From Takakia lepidozioides (taxonomy: Eukaryota > Plantae > Bryophyta), in NCBI GenBank assembly GCA_030704615.1, contig CM060731.1, forward strand, positions 51,274,001 through 51,338,000: 64,000 nt of DNA, written 5' to 3'. The position numbers and the translations under genes are program-made. This document shows positions 33,001-43,853 of this stretch, piece after piece (position 1 is the stretch's first letter; each line of letters begins with the position of its first letter). The notes under the pieces are model-generated. The model had not been told where the DNA came from and ran no database searches. It saw nothing but the letters and a program-made list of their open reading frames with translations.

Positions 33001-34199
33001 ACCATCCACGGTATCTAGCTTGTTTGTAGGACGATTGCCTACAAAAGATTGGACTGTTCTCTATCGTTTATGGACTTGGGACGCAATCGAAGGTGGTCTC
33101 GCAAGAGGTACTGGAGGGGGGTCTGCCCAAAATGGACCGGCATTAGATGGTCCGACATGTGAGGAACCACGGGTCTACTACGCAACACATCAGTTAAGGT
33201 GGAATTGTAGTGACAGGTTGTCATCATCCGAGGCTTCAACTTTCGTCCGGTCCAATGCAGCAGAATGATGTGTGCGTGTGGAAAACAGATCAACCCTGTT
33301 GCTCTTTAATGCCCGCTGTGTTGATGGGGAGCTAGATGGGTTTTGGCATTGTGGTGGAGCCGGTCGTATCGGTGAGGCATATTCTTGTCCCGTCGACTGT
33401 ACAATGGGTTTGGCACCATCATTTGTATGAACAGGGTTGCGTATGTCGCTCGGTCCTGGTAGTTCATCACCCCTAAGCTCCATTGGGGCACTATGGGTGG
33501 CTTCAGCGTGTAATGGGGGGCGAGGGTCGACCCCAACTTCATTCTGATGACCCTGTTATGGGGAGGACACAATTGCAGCTTCACCTTCATCTGCGATATG
33601 TACTTCCTCAAGAAGGTCATCAAAGGTCGGCTGGATATAAGCATCCTCCTTTGTGAACGTAAACGGGTCATACGCATTTTCGGGACCATCATCGGATCCA
33701 TCTTCACTATCAGAGGCAGATGACTCCCTCTGAGATGATTCCTTCTGAGGTTCAGTATCGTCACTCATCGAATCTACCTCAGAAGCAAAGTCTTCGGAAT
33801 GCAAATTCCTCTCATACCATGCTGCAGCATCATCCCATTAGGGAAAGAATGGGGCCTCCATAGGGCCTCCTCTCTTTAGGAGAAAGTAACCATTCGGTCA
33901 ACTTGAAAAAAACCTGAACGGTCAAGATCGATTTGATCTAACGGCTATTAGCTTAAATTAAAAAATCTGCCCGATTTAGCAATCATTAGGGTCCTAATCA
34001 GCGCTCCACGCGGATCGCCGCCCTCCCCACGCAATTTAGGTGCATCGCTCCCGCGCTCCAGCTCAATCGTGCTCCCGCTCAATCGCTCGTCCCACGCTCC
34101 CACTCAATCGCTCGTTTCCCCCAATCTTGGATCTATCAGTTTGAGCTCACAAAGAGCATAGGTACGATGGCGAACACAATTTGAGCTCAGAAAGAGCAG

Positions 34200-34994
34200 G
34201 GACAGTGTTGACCAGAGCACCAAGAAGGACATAACCAAAGATGCCATCCTGAAGAACCAGGGAAAGTGTGATATTTGTAATGCAGATCCTATGGTGAAGT
34301 TCATGCGAGAGGCTCTTGAGAAGGCAGGCTGTCCTCTAGCAGATCAATTCTTCAAATCTGAAGTATGTGATATGCAAGTTGGTGGTGGCTTCAAGCGCGA
34401 TGATGGGGTCAGGTCTTTTCTGTACTCTCTCTCTCTCCCTCTATTTGTGGCATCCATAGCCACCATTGTCTTCGTCCCTGATGACTCTCCTACTTTGGTG
34501 ATTGCACAAAACTTCGTTGCTGCCCTACTGCTTGCTGGAGCTGGAGGCTTGTTTATAGGATCAATTTTGCTTAGTGGATTGCAAGAAGAATAAAGGAATT
34601 CGCGATTCTCTTGATTCCACTGAGCCTACATATTGTTGCAAGTTATTCCGGCTACCATTTGTCTTTCCAATGTCGTCACCTGTCTGATGAAGTCTTTTTC
34701 GACTGAAGCATTTCGGTGGACAGTTTCATTGACTTCAACACTTCTTTAGCCATTCACAACGAGCAGATTGTGTGTGTCTATTATCCTAACTGCCAAAAGA
34801 TGTGGTCGAATGCAGTCGATGAATAACTGATTGTAGCAACATTCCTCCCTCAAGCTCCTTACGAGATGAAGTCATATGTGCAGGGGTAAATTAAGTGCAA
34901 GGTGCGGTATATTGATGGGTTCTCTACTTTGCAGGTGGTGATCTGCAGCAACCATTTGATGATGCAGGATGAAATGGACGTGGCTATGACCCAT
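34200..34994 (+). pseudogene. ATP23: Mitochondrial metalloprotease ATP23 (peptidase M76) 5' fragment, two exons, cut at the HExxH motif
   Basis: DPMVKFMREALEKAGC..FFKSEVC..VGGGFKRDDG | intron 34408-34934 | VVICSNHLMMQDEMDVAMTH, then unrelated sequence. Confidence 0.85.
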
Positions 34995-36508
34995 CTGCAC
35001 TTGTGGCTCAGAAGTTGTTGACTTGGCACCAGAAGAAAAGTGGGGTCAAAAGCCTCAGAAACTCATAACCAGGTGGGTGAGACAGCAACTTCTCCTGTTG
35101 CAGCAATTGATTGCCTTTGATATGAATGGTGGTATTCCAAGTGCCGAATTGGTTCCAGTGAAGTGGGGACGACGACTGTGGGAGAGGAGAGTGGAGATCC
35201 CACTTTGAATGGAGTATGGAAGAGTGGTAGCATTTAGTGGTTATGCTGCTTATATGGCCTGCTTGTTTAACTAGGATGTGGCCTTTGTTCAGAAGGTGAA
35301 CTTTTGAAGTAGTAGATGTGGTGCAGCTGGGCATAGTTTTCCCCAGACCTTCAGCCCTCGAGTTGCTCATTTCCATTGCTCCCTTGATTTTGGTTGGATG
35401 ATCATGCGACATCTTCACAAATCAGGAGGTATTTTTAAAGAAAATTAAAGACATATTTTTCTAATCAGACCTCTCAGCTAGCGCCCTATTCCGGTGTGAC
35501 TGGTGCGGAAATGGCAGCCCATGAGAGGGAGAGAGAGAGGGATGGGGGTTTGAGAGATGAATGTGGGGTGTAGCCATGGCTCAATGAAGATAAGAGGAGG
35601 GCAGCACTGGCAGAGAAGCATCTACGTGGGGCTGCTGCTCGCACCACCAGAGCTCCGTGACTCAAGGTTTAAAGGTATGTGCAAATCTCTCTTCTCCTTT
35701 GTTTGTGGACGGAGGAACTGTCCCACTGAACATGCCAAAAAATGCTGACAGAGCACACACTCTCTAGGGGTGGCAATCTCATACATTTTGTGATAGTCCA
35801 GTCACCCAAATGACAAACAATCATTTGACCACGTTGCTCTATTTCACTTGCCAGGTATCTGTGTTTCAATGAATTTGCAGCTTCGTGTGAAAAAGTTTAC
35901 TGTGCTGACGTTTGTGACCTCCTTTCGCAGGAAATGTCACCCAACAAGTGAAAGAAAGGCCCCAACCTGAAAAATTCAAGTCATAACCACCCCTATCGCA
36001 AGCCCCCCCAAATCCTCCTTGAAGTCCCTGTGGCTTTTCTGTGCTCATTTCTTCACTGCCAAAACACTGCAGCAACAAGGTGTCTATACCAGTAACAGCA
36101 GCTGTCCAGGAGCTTCCACACGCTACAAATACAACGCAGAGGTCAGCCAATTGTCAGTACTTGCAGCCAATTGATTTCGTGTTGGTTCAAGAGTTGGACA
36201 ACCAAAACACTAATGTAATATATGTATGTACAAATTTTCTCGGTGCAGTCATATCTACAACTCAAGAATTGATTAAAAAATAATGCCTCGAAGTACTCTA
36301 GCCACAGTGACGGCACAGATCACATCCACTTTGGTACTGAAAGTGGAAGGATCATAGCTCGTCGTTCTAAAACATTGTATGAGGAACAACAACTGATCTA
36401 TAGCCTAGACAGTCGCACTCCTTGCAACTTCCAAATCTAAGTTCAAATCCGTGATCATTTCAGTGATGTTTTGTGCGTAGCAACAAGCCTATCAGACTGT
36501 GTTCAAAG

Positions 36509-38520
36509 ATGGCTAATGAGAGGGGAAGCTACAAAATTATCAGCAACCATAGCTGGGAAATATGCACCATTGGTACTAAGAATCGCATGCTTCATGAACA
36601 AACTCCGAAATCAGAATTCTCTCATAGACGAGAAGCAGGGACGAGTAATATTGATTTGTGGGTGGATGGATCTTTGTATCCACACAGCCCCGTCGACGGC
36701 AAACGTCCACAATTTCGGACAGTGAGCAAGTTTCTGGAATTTACTGGGGATGGCAAGAGCGGCCTACTGGGTTACTCTGAAAATCTTGCCGCAAATCATA
36801 CAAGAATTGAATTGAATTTCGTTGAGGCTCAGAAAGAGATATCGTTGTTGCGTGAGCTGGTCAAGAGTTTGCAAGATTCAGCTGAGGAGAGAGAGAGACT
36901 CTTACAATTCAGCAACACAGAAACATCACGTAGACAAAGAGTAGAGGAAGAAAATGGTCAGATTATGTTAGCAAGTGAATCGTTGAAAGCGGAGGTATCA
37001 GCTCTGAAAGAGCAATATCACAACATGAAGGCATCTTACGAGGAGTGTTTAGGCCGCTTGAACGCTGATAAACTGAGCTCCGATGAGCGCAATCAAATGG
37101 AGATAGAATTTTGGATAGAGATAGAATCGCTCAAAGAAGAGCACAAAAGGAAATTGGATTCGATTTGCTCTGAGCTACGCAGAACCAAGGCGACCTTGAA
37201 GCGACGGGAATTGAGGATGGAAAAAATGGTGAGGACTCCCTTTGGGTAGGGGTGTCGTCAGACCAAGGAAGGATATGGCTGAATTGGCGCCTAATGGCAA
37301 ACGTTTGAGGCGTTTAGCAAGAGCTATCATTGCCCCAGCTACTGCGAGAGAAATTCAAAGTGCAAATGCAACCAGGGAACGAGAAATCGCTTGTGTGGAA
37401 GTAAAGAGACACAAGTGCAGACTGCGAGGTGTTCGCCTCTATGTTGTCCCAGACAGAAGTTAAGTCAATGTGCGAATCAGCGAAGTTGAGCAAAGTTGGT
37501 GTGCATATGGCCAACTACTACTTGGATAAGATTGGGGAGAAAGTAGGAGCAAATGAGATTCTAGAAACTTGCGATCGGCAAGGTATAACGCACAATGGAT
37601 ATGGAGCCATCTATAAAAAGTTCAAAATGTCTGCCAAAGCTTCTGGTCGGGGCCTTCGCATTGGTTGCTTGCCAAATCCTCATAAGGTGTCATTGCTTCG
37701 GAAAGTGTTGAATCTCAAGCTATGTGAGTATGTCGGCAAATACTACTGCATCAACAATAGCCTTGAGATTCCAGCCACTGCCAAGTCAAAGAGCAACGAG
37801 CCTGTCAGAATGGCGCTCAATCATAATAATTCCATCTTTGTCGATGTGGAACAAGTGCAGCGCACAATGGTCGAACTCTACGGCATCACACCCGCAGGTA
37901 ACACCTTAATTTTGTAGTGTTGCAAGAGATGTAGGGTAAAGCTTCTGATAGGAATCGATTGATTAAACACCTGGGCATTGAGGATTTGGCTGTGTTTGGT
38001 TTCAGAATTGCAGGGACACCCTCTTATTTTTGTCATCAAGCTAGATGAAGCTGAAATTGTGCACGCTCAAAAGATGGAGAGAGTGTCTCTAACACTGATG
38101 AACCGGGCTTTGGACATTACGATTGAGCCAAACAGTGAACAACTCTTCTCAGTTCAGTCAGAGAGGGAGATTTGGCCCATCGCTTCATTCCAAGTGGTGC
38201 GGGAAACCTATGTAACATTGAGTTGGGTCTTCTCGCAAACTACCATTCCTGCGTTGATTCAAGCACAGGAGCAAGGACAGCCACTGGATGTCCCTGGTAT
38301 TGGATCCTTTCAGGTGGAATGGCATATGGCGGCAGCTATAAAGACAATAAAAGTGATGTACAACTTGGGAGCTGGAGCAAATAGCTTACACAGTTGCATC
38401 TACTGCAACCAAGAACGCACGAAGCCTGTAGTGGGCACCACTACACAAGCCCAAGCAGCCATAAAGAAACGAACCAAGTACACTTGGAATGAAGGGTTGT
38501 TTTCAAGGAAAGTGGACATC
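36509..38520 (+). pseudogene. RAG1/Transib/Chapaev-like DDE transposase, N-terminal two-thirds, with coiled-coil N-terminus
   Basis: LPNPHKV..R, intron 37898-38005, IFVIKLDE (first Asp), SVQSE.EIWPI...RET, FQVEWHMAAAIKTIKVMYNLGAGANSLHSCIYC. The last resembles RAG1 [25 protein letters not shown], with the second Asp as GCT (one base from GAT). Two frameshifts; C-terminus missing. Confidence 0.65.
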
Positions 38521-39120
38521 CTTGTCACAGGGCCCATGCTAGTTTGTTGTAGTAGACCTGGCAGGAAGAGACAGGAACACGAGAGTAAAAAGTAGCTTTG
38601 ACGATGTTGTAAAACGACAATCCCAGAAGGAGAAGTCCCGAGAGGCTTTCTACTCTCTCCTCACAGCTCTAGCCCTGAGACGCAACATAATCTAAGTCTA
38701 GTAGGAAGGCATGAAGCCCTTTGAACTCACCTTGAGGCTATAGATAGAAAGTGAATCACTGCAAATGCAGCTGATGCTGGTGCCCCGACCAGTGGCTCTA
38801 TCAACCAAGGCCTCCACTGCTGTAGACTGTAACCTTGGCCCCTTACCCATCTCCCCCTTCAAAAACACCAATAGCCTTCTAGATGGTAAGTGAAATGTTG
38901 TGCATACAGGTGCACATAGTTGGGTGTACAATGACAATCAAACTCACCACAGTCATACTGCCTCAACCCACCTCTGTAATATACTTGGCAATTTTATGCC
39001 ACCAATTGTGGATGTGGATGTGGATCCCAGAGCACAAGGCATCAGCCAGCCCAGATGATATAATTGCACCTGATTCTCCCGAGCATCAACTCGCTGGTCC
39101 AATACGACACGCCGATGCTG

Positions 39121-39535
39121 AAAATGGCAGCAGAAAAGAGATCTCGCAAAGAAAATTGTTTCATCTCTTTCCAACAGACTGTACATGCTGAAACAGGACT
39201 CTAACGAGCTTCATTCCAAGATACACATTCCAATCATTTCACCAGAATTTGGCCAAACATCACTTGAATGCTCAAATAATCCACGCAATCATGTTTGCTT
39301 GAACAGCTTGTATACCGGCCAAAGACTGCTCATAAATGAAAAACGAACCTAAGAGATAGCAGAGGCAATGGCCAATTCTGCTAAAGGTAAACCACACCAG
39401 AATTTCACTGCAATCCATGTGAATGTCCAGCTGAGATATAAGATCTGCCAAAAATGGCAGCAGAATAGAGATCTCGCAAAGAAAATTGTTTCATCTCTTT
39501 CCAACAGACTGTACATGCTGAAACAGGACTCTAAC
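39121..39535 (+). repeat. 85-bp direct repeat, two copies 330 bp apart
   Basis: AAAATGGCAGCAGAA(A/T)AGAGATCTCGC...AACAGGACTCTAAC at 39121 and 39451. Confidence 0.9.
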
Positions 39536-39641
39536 TCTCACTACCACCACCCAGAAAAGAGGCCCCTCACCATCAGTAACCCCAAGCTTAAACCCCCAGG
39601 CGTGAATGCTCGATTCGGCATGTAGTAATCTGCTAATAACC

Positions 39642-41094
39642 TCAGGTCCTTGCAAGCAATCGCACCATTTTGGGTGGCAAAACAGATTGGACCAGCATGT
39701 TCTTCTCATTCCTTGCATTCACCTGCGTGTCCAAAATAAGGCAAAGGATTTAGGGTTCTTGCTATCGACCATATGACCAAAACAGTGAAGATAGTATTGA
39801 ATAGGGGAAGTTCCTAACCTTAACTGGCGTATTCTCAGCTTCAATGACCCACATTTCCAAGTTTGCATCCGGATCAGATCCCAACTGTATCAAAATCTCC
39901 TGCCGAAGGTCTGCCAAAGACCATGATGATCCAACATCCAAGTCCAGTCTCCATTCTCCAACCTCACAGTGGATACTTACCATGCCAACAGGTTCAAATT
40001 TGTCAATCGCCTCCCAAACTAACTCTGAAACCATTCTCTGCCGATTGTATTGAAAATTTGCATATAATGTGGACCGTCCTATATGGTATCTGAATACAAG
40101 TGAAGGTCGATGGACGGTGCATTTGACAACATCTGCTCCTATCACTATTTTGGTGTCCCATCCCCCATCCATGAGTGTCTCACACAGTTTGTCAGTAATT
40201 CGTTTGAAAACAAACATCGTAGACGTCATGTGCATGTCTACGGCGGCTGCAAATAGATCAATAAAGACACCAATTGGCATGAACCACGAGATATGGGTCT
40301 GTTTGCTGCCTGTGTTAGGTTTCATGACGCTTTGAAAATCATGACGCTTTGAAAATCCAGCTGCAGTCTAGCTCGAAAGGCTTCGGTTGTTGACTGGTCC
40401 GGCAATGGCCACTCGTGATCATCGAAGCCTGGAAGTGGAATTGGCACCAATCGCCCAAAACCTATGTTCGAGGATCAGGGTATGTAGGACGCATTGTAAA
40501 AAAATATTCCATTATCCAAGAGTTCTTTATGTGGACGATTGCCTCGGGTAAGCTCTCCAATCTCTGAGTGCGTTACTGGAATCACCCCCATTATGCATTT
40601 CGGGTCTACCCAATCCTCAAAGTTGGAAGGAAACAAATCTGTCACAACCAACCATATCTTTAGTATGAACAATTGGACCAGCATCAAAGAGAGGCTTTTA
40701 GATTCATAGTCAGAGTTGTAAACCTACAATTGCAAGCACCCGCGGCAGGTAGGTCGTTCGGATCTAGATCCAATTGCCGCCACATGTATGCATGTTGCAC
40801 CCGCACTGCAGACACAACTGTAGCTCCGGCATTCACTCGAAACTTCAACACCTTTGCTTTGTAACAACCATCCATGCTACTACTGCCCCCATGCTTCACT
40901 GCATCTCTTGCATGACTTCCATTTCTACCGGCCATGAGTGTAACCCAAGAGTTAACCTCAATTTTTGTAGGTATCCACCTTCCACTACTGTCGAGTGAAT
41001 TGAACAAAAGAACCCCCTCAACTGAAGATCGAGGCCTCATTGAGATTGGGCTGAAGCGAAGGCTTTGTTGGCGCCAAGGCTTCTGAGCGCTCAA
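39642..41094 (-). pseudogene. Spliced ~415-aa gene: BAH-like domain, unknown middle domain, ubiquitin-like C-terminus
   Basis: Exons ~41094-40728, 40638-39819 and 39722-39642 (GT-AG, in phase). One TGA (40477) and a 17-bp tandem duplication (40322-40355); correcting both restores a single frame. YKAKVLKF..AVRVQHAY..NYLFPSNFEDWVDPKCIMGVIPV..FFYNASY. LDLDVGSSWSLADLRQEI..EMWV. Confidence 0.6.
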
Positions 41095-42244
41095 GCCAGT
41101 AGCAAATTACAAAAGGCAATGTTCTTATGGATATTGCGGGCTCCAAACGTTCATAATGCAACTCCTTCGTTGAAACCATCGTCTATCACCGACTTCATTT
41201 CCTTCAGGTATGCTCTGCAAAAAGCCAAGTTGGTGGAAAAAGCTTGGCTGGGTTAAAAAAAAACATGGTAGTGCTAAAACCGTTACGAATTGAAAAGAAA
41301 TCTCAAAACAATATTTGAAACAATTTGGAAAGCCTGCCATTGGAACTCAGAAGAGCACAAAAAATTGTCACCGTTCCAATCTCCCTAAAAATTGGTTACT
41401 GCTCTTACAAACACTAAGCTGCCTGATCTGCCAGCTGCCTTTTGGGCTGCACCACACCCACAATTGTAAGGTGGACCAGCTCATGGTAAGGCATGCAAAA
41501 GAGCAGTGCATCATCAATAACTATGATACAAAGAGTACTTATTGCAAACAGGAACAAATAGACAGTGACTAATCACTCCCTTGGGCATTTAGCAACATTT
41601 GTGAGTTAACAGATTGACTTATTAACTTCATTACATGTATGACAGAGAGAGCAGAAAAAGTATATTTTGTGTACAAGACAGCCTGCACAGCCTAAGGACC
41701 ACATGACGATTCTATTTGAGATTTCTGAAACTAAGGTAAGACTGAAACCCTGATGGACTTGTTAAGTGGCCCTCAGATTGAGTGCACCATGGAGATAAGC
41801 GGCTAAGCACTTGTGGTCTTCATAGCTTGAGGCCTCTGAAGAGAATAGTACTCATGAGAAGTTGTTTGCTAAAAGGCTCCTGAAGCGGGAGCTCTTTCGG
41901 GTTTCACTGCTATCTTCAGTAGGTTGGCTTGCCCAAAAAAACAAAAGAAAATTACTCGCATGCACCTGAAGAGAGAAAGAAACAGATTACATCCACCTCC
42001 TATGGGACACATTAGGACTGCAAGAGAACACCAAACGGGAAAGAACAAAATTCACTTTACAACGTCCACAGACTTAACTGAATGCGTACAAAAAGCAAGA
42101 GCGAGGTAGAAAATACCAAGTCTTTAAAGAGCAGGAAAACGATGATGAAGAAGAGAACAAGGAGAATCTCAAACTCGGCCACCCGCACCAGCTTGAAAAC
42201 ATAGTCCACAGCCCTGGTAAGCAGCGATCCTTTCGATACTCACC

Positions 42245-43190: not shown

Positions 43191-43853
43191 AAGGTAGTAG
43201 TGGGTGACGTGGATGACGTTCGTCCACCTCAGTTTGGTATTTTTTTTTTCATCCGGTCAGCCCTACCTTTTTCAAAGGCATATCAAAATAATCAAGGCCC
43301 TATATAGGCCCCATTCTTCTCCTAATGGCTGCCCTCTTACGGAGCAGTCGACAATTAGTATACACATACACCAATTTGTCAGCCCTCGCGGGATTCAACC
43401 TGTTGCGAATATTGTTGTGAACAAATGAGTAACTGCTCCAATAGCGTTCGCAAGATGAGGCAGAGCACACTTGGGCAAGAATACGCTTCGCAATGGGAAC
43501 CAATGTTCTTGCTCCAGCTCCAATCAAATCCCACCATTCATGTGGCAACATATTGAGCTCTTTTGGATCCGGCATGTCCTCAAAAGGGTTGTGGCGATCT
43601 GAGAAGCATTGGTACACGGATATAGCTCTCTCTGCCATGTTCGGTGGAATCAGTCGTATGAACACTGTATGTGCACAATTTAACGCGCAAATATTTTTTG
43701 AGTATTTTTGAGGCAAGGAGAACCGATTTGTACACAGATAGCGAAAGAACACTACCATTTGTATTAGAAACGCGAAACATCAAAATGGTTATTGGTATGG
43801 CCCACAAATGGAAGAGGTCTGCGACGTCCATGAAGCCAAAACGCTCAGGAGTT

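Follow-up and report, generated by a model that had tools for sequence, protein, structure and literature searches.

Does a land plant carry a transposon in which a transposase of the RAG1 and Transib kind faces a second gene unrelated to RAG2? The taming of a transposase into an immune recombinase is classically illustrated by RAG1 and Transib (RAG1 shuffles antibody genes), and how and why RAG1 acquired RAG2 is still debated. The question is raised by a stretch of 64,000 nucleotides of Takakia lepidozioides (GenBank assembly GCA_030704615.1, contig CM060731.1, positions 51,274,001 to 51,338,000 of the forward strand), hereafter the window, in which an original prediction, made from the letters alone, had placed a RAG1/Transib-like transposase gene tail-to-tail with a partner gene for a BAH and ubiquitin-like protein. 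In the present study, we consider it probable that a degenerate transposon copy lies in the window and that it belongs to a land-plant family of cut-and-paste DNA elements with two genes and a transposase of the RAG1/Transib fold. As far as can be told, this two-gene family is real and undescribed, and what is new here is the architecture of the partner, the co-divergence of the two genes and the inverted repeat that encloses them.

The transposase gene of the window lies on the plus strand at 36509-38515. The open reading frame (ORF) at 37978-38595 carries, in the order that had been predicted, K-L-D at 38038-38046, the [D]xK site at 38329-38343 and CxxC (CIYC) at 38395-38406; the [D]xK site reads AAAIK in the window against ADMK in the family consensus, the second catalytic Asp being replaced by Ala at 38335-38337. 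As queries we took single exons, ORFs as they stand or proteins from databases, with no spliced joins and no reading through stops. With exon B, the catalytic part of the gene, 41 proteins of 49-71% identity were obtained, and the profile of these homologues led to 442 cluster representatives among 1.84 billion proteins searched. None of the family members is annotated, and both genes of the element are without annotation in public data. The family consensus runs FVLKLDEAEI ... WHLxADMKTIK ... CIYCxQxR ... RVHICTLHA ... HVTHYIV. A further exon in other copies reads QHVIVKH..WFVEEYGSLSVWSCQGMEKSH, that is HxxxxH followed by the third acidic residue, and their C-terminal exon has the pattern HxxxxH..GS...W...G.E; in the marine relative L017 the HxxxxH exon is contiguous with the preceding one. 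Across the transposase family the D of KLDE, the D of ADMK and the E of QGMEKSH are conserved. CxxC and HxxxxH are both kept in the plant and marine lineages and are both gone in the lineage of P0174, P0177 and P0215, as is expected if the four residues make up a single zinc site as in RAG1, where the zinc residues are C727/C730/H937/H942. By this pattern, CxxC and HxxxxH should form a zinc site of the RAG1 type.

The fold of the transposase was examined with P0177, a full-length relative of 585 amino acids, which was modelled by AlphaFold from a 67-row alignment (predicted local distance difference test score, pLDDT, 80; predicted template modelling score, pTM, 0.77). When this model was compared with the PDB by Foldseek, all 49 hits at E <= 1e-3 were RAG1, the amphioxus RAG-like protein BbRAGL or the Helicoverpa zea transposase HzTransib, over about 600 columns, and the next hit was Hermes at E 3e-3 with a template-modelling (TM) score of 0.23. 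In VIA-align, the model matched RAG1 with Z 21.2 over 449 residues (RAG1 460-1008), HzTransib with Z 20.4 over 427 residues and BbRAGL with Z 18.5. Among the other superfamilies compared, the P element came next at 11.1, before ISCth4 at 9.6 and Hermes at 7.7. The parts of the model are found in the order of the RAG1 core, namely DDBD, pre-RNase H, RNase H, ZnC2, ZnH2 and C-terminal domain. The triad D118, D208 and E465 of P0177 is spaced by 90 and 257 residues against 108 and 254 in RAG1, a comparison of spacing and not a residue-by-residue superposition. A language-model search placed exon B of the window itself beside clusters labelled RAG1_RNase_H, RAG1_ZnC2 and RAG1_ZnH2 (scores 0.95-0.96), and RAG1 domain families made up 9 of its 10 best named neighbours. 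On the predicted structure, the RAG1/Transib fold can be taken as established for the transposase family, and the original assignment was borne out.

It is unlikely, in our view, that the transposase belongs instead to the CMC assemblage (EnSpm/CACTA, Mirage, Chapaev) rather than to Transib proper, with the match to RAG1 arising from the absence of CMC structures. Several features of the family would suit this assignment. Like CMC members, it is a plant-borne element with terminal inverted repeats (TIRs), its repeat starts with CA and its transposase has a D...CxxC motif; D-x-K/P ... G ... CxxC after the second Asp is common to CACTA transposases. The repeat start CATTA recalls CACTA, one language-model neighbour cluster was Transposase_21 (0.94), and neither a CAC heptamer nor a 5-bp target duplication was found. 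CACTA elements likewise depend on a pair of proteins, TnpA and TnpD. However, these come from alternative splicing of one transcript, whereas the present proteins come from separate convergent genes. A target duplication of 2-4 bp is not seen either, and Pfam, run on every exon and on 10 long homologues, gave no match to a RAG1, Transib, CACTA, Plavaka or KDZ family. The nearest neighbours, both by language model and by fold, are RAG1 and not tnp2; the structural match extends over DDBD, PreR, the ZnH2 region and the C-terminal domain, and the catalytic-Glu motif (HxxxxH-8-GS-3-W-3-G-x-E) follows that of RAG1.

In aquatic and marine data, from algae or metagenomes, the transposase has relatives that are more distant. 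The lineage of P0174, P0177 and P0215 (JGI/NCBI proteins; locus L016), in which D, D and E are kept and the zinc motifs are lost, has intronless genes on short metagenome contigs. The P0079 cluster (loci L017-L020) bears EukProt labels of Pyramimonas and Prorocentrum transcriptomes and occurs also in aquatic metagenomes, which points to marine protists or algae as hosts of relatives of the plant transposase. In P0143 and P0101, a piece of the transposase is fused with an integrase (Integrase_H2C2/rve) or with DUF7794; these fusions are probably gene-calling chimeras across nested insertions.

The link between the two genes was evaluated in nine long loci, comprising the window and long contigs of the ENA assembly ERZ25073694. 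This assembly is from a land plant, as judged by its PPR E-motif genes, and since its best identity is 62% it is from a species other than that of the window. In 7 of the 9 loci (window, L001, L011, L012, L013, L014 and L015) the transposase gene on the plus strand is followed, tail-to-tail, by the partner gene on the minus strand. The convergent layout therefore recurs in other copies, six of these seven being from the second land-plant assembly. The partner is missing only at L003 and L010, both of which have truncated transposases. The 3' ends of the two genes abut in L015. Over the seven copies, the pairwise identities of the transposase and of the partner are correlated (Mantel r 0.68, permutation p 0.001), and the gene pair has thus diverged as a unit. 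A metagenome scan gave six short loci that were useless for linkage.

The facing gene could also be a passenger, that is a captured or neighbouring host gene without a role in transposition, but we regard this as quite improbable. A prediction of the complex gave no support for binding, without being a verdict; no partner was found near the distant aquatic and marine relatives L016-L020, whose contigs end 0.3-1.5 kb from the gene; and the window copy carries host-gene fragments as well. On the other hand, subfamilies of no more than 40-66% identity keep the same gene in the same orientation and position. The inverted repeats enclose it, its divergence follows that of the transposase, and its 3' end stays within tens to hundreds of bases of that of the transposase. 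At L013 (11500-17450) the two genes are 6 kb apart, and the gap holds a 394-amino-acid ORF on the minus strand with weak coiled-coil and RING hints. Other mobile-element genes are found near the family copies, namely DUF7869 (L003 11426-11872), a Tc1/mariner-type helix-turn-helix with DDE_3 (L014 6439-7456), DDE_1 (L015 10083-10457) and a retroviral-type integrase (L011 16830-17486), and those regions are rich in transposons.

In the window, the partner gene occupies 39645-41106 on the minus strand, with its stop codon at 39642-39644. Three ORF pieces on that strand (41106-40687, 40723-40325 and 40367-39765) are parts of this one gene, which carries two lesions, an in-frame stop at 40475-40477 and an exact 17-bp tandem duplication (40322-40338/40339-40355). 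A search with the 187-amino-acid ORF of the partner gave 27 proteins of 44-63% identity, and the alignment of the homologues passes straight through both lesions, so that the reading frame obtained by correcting one stop and one duplication, as had been proposed, is that of the family. A contig of 1458 nucleotides, from a run guessed to be RNA although its RNA nature is uncertain, matches the partner at about 95% and is without the duplication. It skips two segments that are both bounded by GT..AG on the minus strand. The skip of the intron nearest the 3' end is in frame, and the family C-terminus resumes after it; the other (40639-40956) may belong to a non-productive isoform, because it is out of frame with the conserved reading. 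The L013 partner has no intron in its BAH-like region.

The partner protein has about 430 residues: its N-terminal beta region weakly resembles BAH, an alpha/beta domain occupies the centre, and a ubiquitin-like domain forms the C-terminus. P0043, whose 295 amino acids are the C-terminal 70% of a partner, was modelled with 37 rows to a mean pLDDT of 75.5. Residues 214-295 of this model form a ubiquitin-like beta-grasp (block-mean pLDDT 85-95), which in VIA-align matched a UBX domain (Z 9.6, root-mean-square deviation 2.1 A over 74 residues) and the ubiquitin-like domain of TBCE (Z 9.6). Foldseek returned TBCE, ISG15, SUMO and PB1 domains with TM scores by target of 0.6-0.74, and all the structural hits of the model were ubiquitin-like domains. 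The C-terminus of the partner is, according to this model, a ubiquitin-like fold, and this half of the predicted domain composition was confirmed. Residues 84-213, for the most part well modelled with block means of 59-96 (lowest at 84-90), had no match in the whole-model searches, whose hit lists were filled by the ubiquitin-like domain. No beta-propeller such as the six-bladed Kelch propeller of RAG2 is present in residues 84-295 of the model, which are alpha/beta and beta-grasp, and the N-terminal part outside the model, about 190 residues, could not accommodate six blades. Because the modelled part has no propeller, no homology of the partner to RAG2 is seen, in agreement with what had been proposed.

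The ends of the element were placed differently by our analysis. The original prediction had the unit start with CAC and bracketed it by TGACAGAG, taken as an 8-bp target duplication. Both sequences are present, with CAC at 35754, but as ends they did not hold: the 1.5-kb flanks have 49 8-mers in common where shuffles give about 37, which leaves the bracket at the level of chance, and the sequences inside it are not inverted repeats. Conserved inverted repeats that start with CATTAGG were found instead about 2 kb further out, and no 8-bp duplication was supported. The longest inverted repeat around the unit of the window is 33835-33868 / 43295-43328, of 34 nucleotides at 88%. The conserved block consists of CATTAGG, a purine-rich run and GGGCC, and it also flanks the unit in L011 (7794 / 14019) and L015 (577 / 5766), while L001 holds one arm. 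Both genes lie between the repeats in the window, L011 and L015; all arms point inward, and conservation begins abruptly at the C of CATTAGG. In the 277 kb compared, all close matches to the block (0-4 mismatches) are these seven arms, and four poorer matches appeared elsewhere at the loosest setting (window 1337, 25068 and 30992; L011 6594). The definition of ends from multiple copies gave a shared block without a target duplication. Subfamilies L012-L014 have other ends.

Beside the right block, a 152-amino-acid ORF on the minus strand (43300-43758) has a hAT C-terminal dimerisation domain (Pfam E 8e-8), and its last ten codons read through the block. The ORF is probably the remnant of a neighbouring hAT element. 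That the CATTAGG block might be the coding end of a hAT-like ORF was rejected, as only the right arm of the window fits and none of the six other arms does. The left spacer has an ORF (34291-34593, plus strand) with fragments of Peptidase_M76 (E 5e-5) and DUF1118 (E 3e-17).

The window copy itself has decayed. Its N-terminal ORF (36473-37249) and exon A had been read as spliced to each other, but close paralogues from the same organism have additional bases at three places (AC at 37247, C at 37371, A at 37426), all of which the window lacks, and P0238 reads through this region in one continuous frame; the apparent splicing here is therefore the result of frameshifts. The GT..AG intron further on is a real part of the spliced gene, as predicted, and links the ORF at 37429-37917 in frame to that at 37978-38595. 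Past 38515, the paralogues run on with the expected coding sequence, while the window continues with unrelated sequence, in which no transposase remnant was found by tblastn. The transposase of the window is truncated at that point, and the loss takes away the zinc histidines and the catalytic Glu. With three small frameshifting deletions, the change of the second Asp to Ala, the lost C-terminal part, and the stop and 17-bp duplication of the partner, this copy, as judged from its sequence, cannot work. DNA runs of the same organism contain many paralogues at 90-99% identity (contigs of public runs), and from these identities the element is judged to be multi-copy and recent in the organism. 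That the pair is a domesticated pair of host genes at this locus is hardly credible, since the loss of the second catalytic Asp in the window, which would speak for it, stands against two genes broken by frameshifts, stop, duplication and large deletion, many close paralogues, and inverted repeats that flank the unit. The coordinates of the features are collected in Table 1.

Table 1. Features of the transposon copy in the window, with strand and the observations on which each is based
Feature	Coordinates	Strand	Basis
Left inverted-repeat block (CATTAGG...GGGCC), transposase side; probable terminal or subterminal repeat	33836..33867	+	pairs with 43296-43327; only two occurrences in the 64-kb window
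TGACAGAG, left, of the original prediction; chance 8-mer, no element end	35746..35753	+	8-mer count against shuffles
Transposase N-terminal region: start ATG, conserved N-terminal motif, coiled coil; stop at its end made by a frameshift	36509..37249	+	homologous to P0238 N-terminus and to L003, L004, L010-L013, L015; paralogues have two more bases at 37247
Same transposase exon continued in another frame, shifted by small deletions	37242..37463	+	frame-0 ORF aligns to P0238 residues past the coiled coil; paralogues have inserted C at 37371, A at 37426
Transposase exon A, pre-catalytic; corresponds to RAG1 DDBD/PreR in the model of a relative	37429..37897	+	50-70% identity to the same exon of L003, L004, L010-L013, L015; GT donor at 37898
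Transposase intron GT..AG, phase 1	37898..38005	+	frame kept; P0238 reads through the homologous intron with non-conserved residues
Transposase exon B, RNase H-like catalytic part; homology ends at 38515	38006..38515	+	family alignment; language-model neighbours are RAG1 RNase H/ZnC2 clusters; paralogue contigs diverge from the window past 38515; blank tblastn downstream
Unrelated filler in place of the C-terminal 45% of the transposase gene, with a 90-nt direct repeat	38516..39640		no transposase remnant; no copy elsewhere in the window or loci
Partner last exon: end of the ubiquitin-like domain	39645..39722	-	translation fits the family C-terminus (..RNEK..LPPK..)
Partner intron GT..AG, 96 nt	39723..39818	-	skipped in the 1458-nt contig of a 95%-identical paralogue (run guessed to be RNA); frame kept
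Partner main exon: C-terminal half of the BAH-like region, central alpha/beta domain, start of the ubiquitin-like domain; with the stop and the duplication	39819..40638	-	family alignments; P0043 model with fold matches; paralogue contig without the duplication
Partner N-terminal exon: first half of the BAH-like region	40687..41106	-	37-65% identity to this exon of L001, L011-L015; not separated from the following exon in intronless L013
TGACAGAG, right, of the original prediction; chance 8-mer, no element end	41640..41647	+	8-mer count against shuffles
Right inverted-repeat block, partner side	43296..43327	-	pairs with the left block

In the filler downstream of the truncated transposase, the two units of the direct repeat (39116-39205 and 39446-39535) are 97% identical and 330 nucleotides apart. 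Two short islands, 38729-38824 and 41122-41196, have matches in longer contigs, from runs guessed to be RNA, that diverge on both sides; the islands resemble exons or conserved parts of other transcripts. At CAG|GT (41207), which would be a donor on the plus strand, one of the contigs departs from the window.

A number of observations weigh against the reading of the window as a degenerate copy of a two-gene transposon with a RAG1/Transib-fold transposase. No significant sequence similarity to RAG1 or Transib was found, the best being Pfam PF12940 (RAG1) with E 0.11 in one of nine pieces, and phmmer and hmmsearch against the PDB with four profiles were blank. The protein that was folded, P0177, belongs to the distant lineage without the zinc motifs and not to the plant lineage, and to our knowledge there is no solved CACTA or Chapaev transposase structure for comparison. 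The BAH part of the predicted partner fared less well than the ubiquitin-like part: PF01426 was matched below the Pfam threshold in 3 of 17 partner pieces, at best with E 0.0041 and 17.5 bits against a cut-off of 30.8. The matches of the start of the second exon of the partner (E 0.0041 and 0.25) cover profile positions 62-115 of 121, which is the C-terminal half; a profile search of the PDB was blank for BAH, and the intronless L013 version had no BAH neighbour by language model. The BAH identity of the N-terminus, suggested by these profile matches, is weak. At the ends, no target-site duplication of 2-10 bp at any offset was found in three copies, nor a further inverted repeat outside the block, nor a CAC heptamer at the repeat; because of this the block is taken as a probable terminal or subterminal repeat. 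The copies are old, and a target duplication could have been lost later. In the window 2.2-2.7 kb separate the blocks from the genes, where other copies have 0.3-0.7 kb, and this space holds host-gene fragments, which points to insertions or captured host DNA in these spacers. Stops are present in all seven convergent copies, none of which is an intact element. Finally, the complex prediction of the exon-B protein P0069 with partner residues 84-295 scored 0.01, which is no verdict for or against binding.

The general plan of an element of this family may be taken from the compact copy L015, of about 5.2 kb, in which an inverted repeat of 32-34 nucleotides is followed by a leader of about 0.3 kb, the intron-bearing transposase gene, the tail-to-tail partner gene, a second leader of about 0.3 kb and the second inverted repeat. 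The transposase begins with a conserved motif and a coiled coil, and its core, which comes after them, has the RAG1/Transib architecture with an RNase H fold. Excision could proceed by the RAG1/Transib route, with a nick at the end of the repeat and subsequent formation of a hairpin on the flanking DNA. The partner may read chromatin or bind the transposase, as an accessory subunit which would regulate the enzyme or tether it to chromatin in the manner of RAG2 for RAG1, although of other origin. It is possible, but in our opinion doubtful, that a land-plant lineage of the RAG1 fold independently evolved an obligate second subunit, a BAH-like and ubiquitin-like protein that directs or licenses cleavage through chromatin.

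Among the closest known systems, the RAG1-RAG2 and RAG-like transposons (ProtoRAG, PDB 6b40; mouse RAG1/2, 4wwx) include the best structural match, RAG1, and likewise have two convergent, tail-to-tail genes between inverted repeats; the present partner may also carry a chromatin-reading module, as RAG2 does in its PHD finger. Instead of the Kelch propeller of RAG2, the partner has an alpha/beta middle without a match, between an N-terminus that is weakly BAH-like and a C-terminus that is ubiquitin-like, and no heptamer or nonamer like those of recombination signal sequences was recognised in the element. With the Transib of Helicoverpa zea (PDB 6pqn/6pqx) the transposase shares its overall fold, a DDE triad with a long insertion before the Glu, the CxxC and His-His zinc motifs and cut-and-paste transposition between TIRs. 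It is unlike Transib in having no detectable sequence similarity, an added N-terminal coiled-coil region and spliceosomal introns. Transib has one gene, whereas the present element has a second, conserved one; the present repeat starts with CATTAGG and not with CAC, the 5-bp target duplication is not seen, and the host is a land plant. PIF/Harbinger is also a DNA transposon family of plants with a transposase and a second, separately encoded protein, but its transposase is of an unrelated fold family (DDE_Tnp_4), its partner is Myb-like and its target duplication is of 3 bp (TAA).

In a previous study, Tao et al. (2022; PMC9435367) listed 39 'Transib-like' proteins from plant assemblies (Capsicum, Hordeum, Silene and others), the named examples being all angiosperms and the Capsicum example lying on a 3.6-kb scaffold, and reported a RAG1L-RAG2L pair in a pelagophyte alga. 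Unlike the present family, those plant proteins were found by sequence similarity to canonical Transib, and no partner gene was described for them. In those supplementary sequences of that study that were compared, the motifs of the present family do not occur. In the papers searched, we found no Transib- or RAG1-like element described for bryophytes, nor one whose partner is BAH or ubiquitin-like, and the expectation that such an element had not been described in plants was thereby supported.

As the window copy is dead, its value is in the architecture that it revealed and not in activity. A deep-branching RAG1-fold family in land plants, unseen by sequence searches and with an unrelated partner, widens the host range of the fold and provides an independent two-protein design to compare with RAG1-RAG2, as well as a new element type for annotators of plant genomes. 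Should the partner indeed direct or license cleavage through chromatin, the design of a recombinase with a chromatin-reading partner would have arisen at least twice, and there would be a plant system in which to test why.

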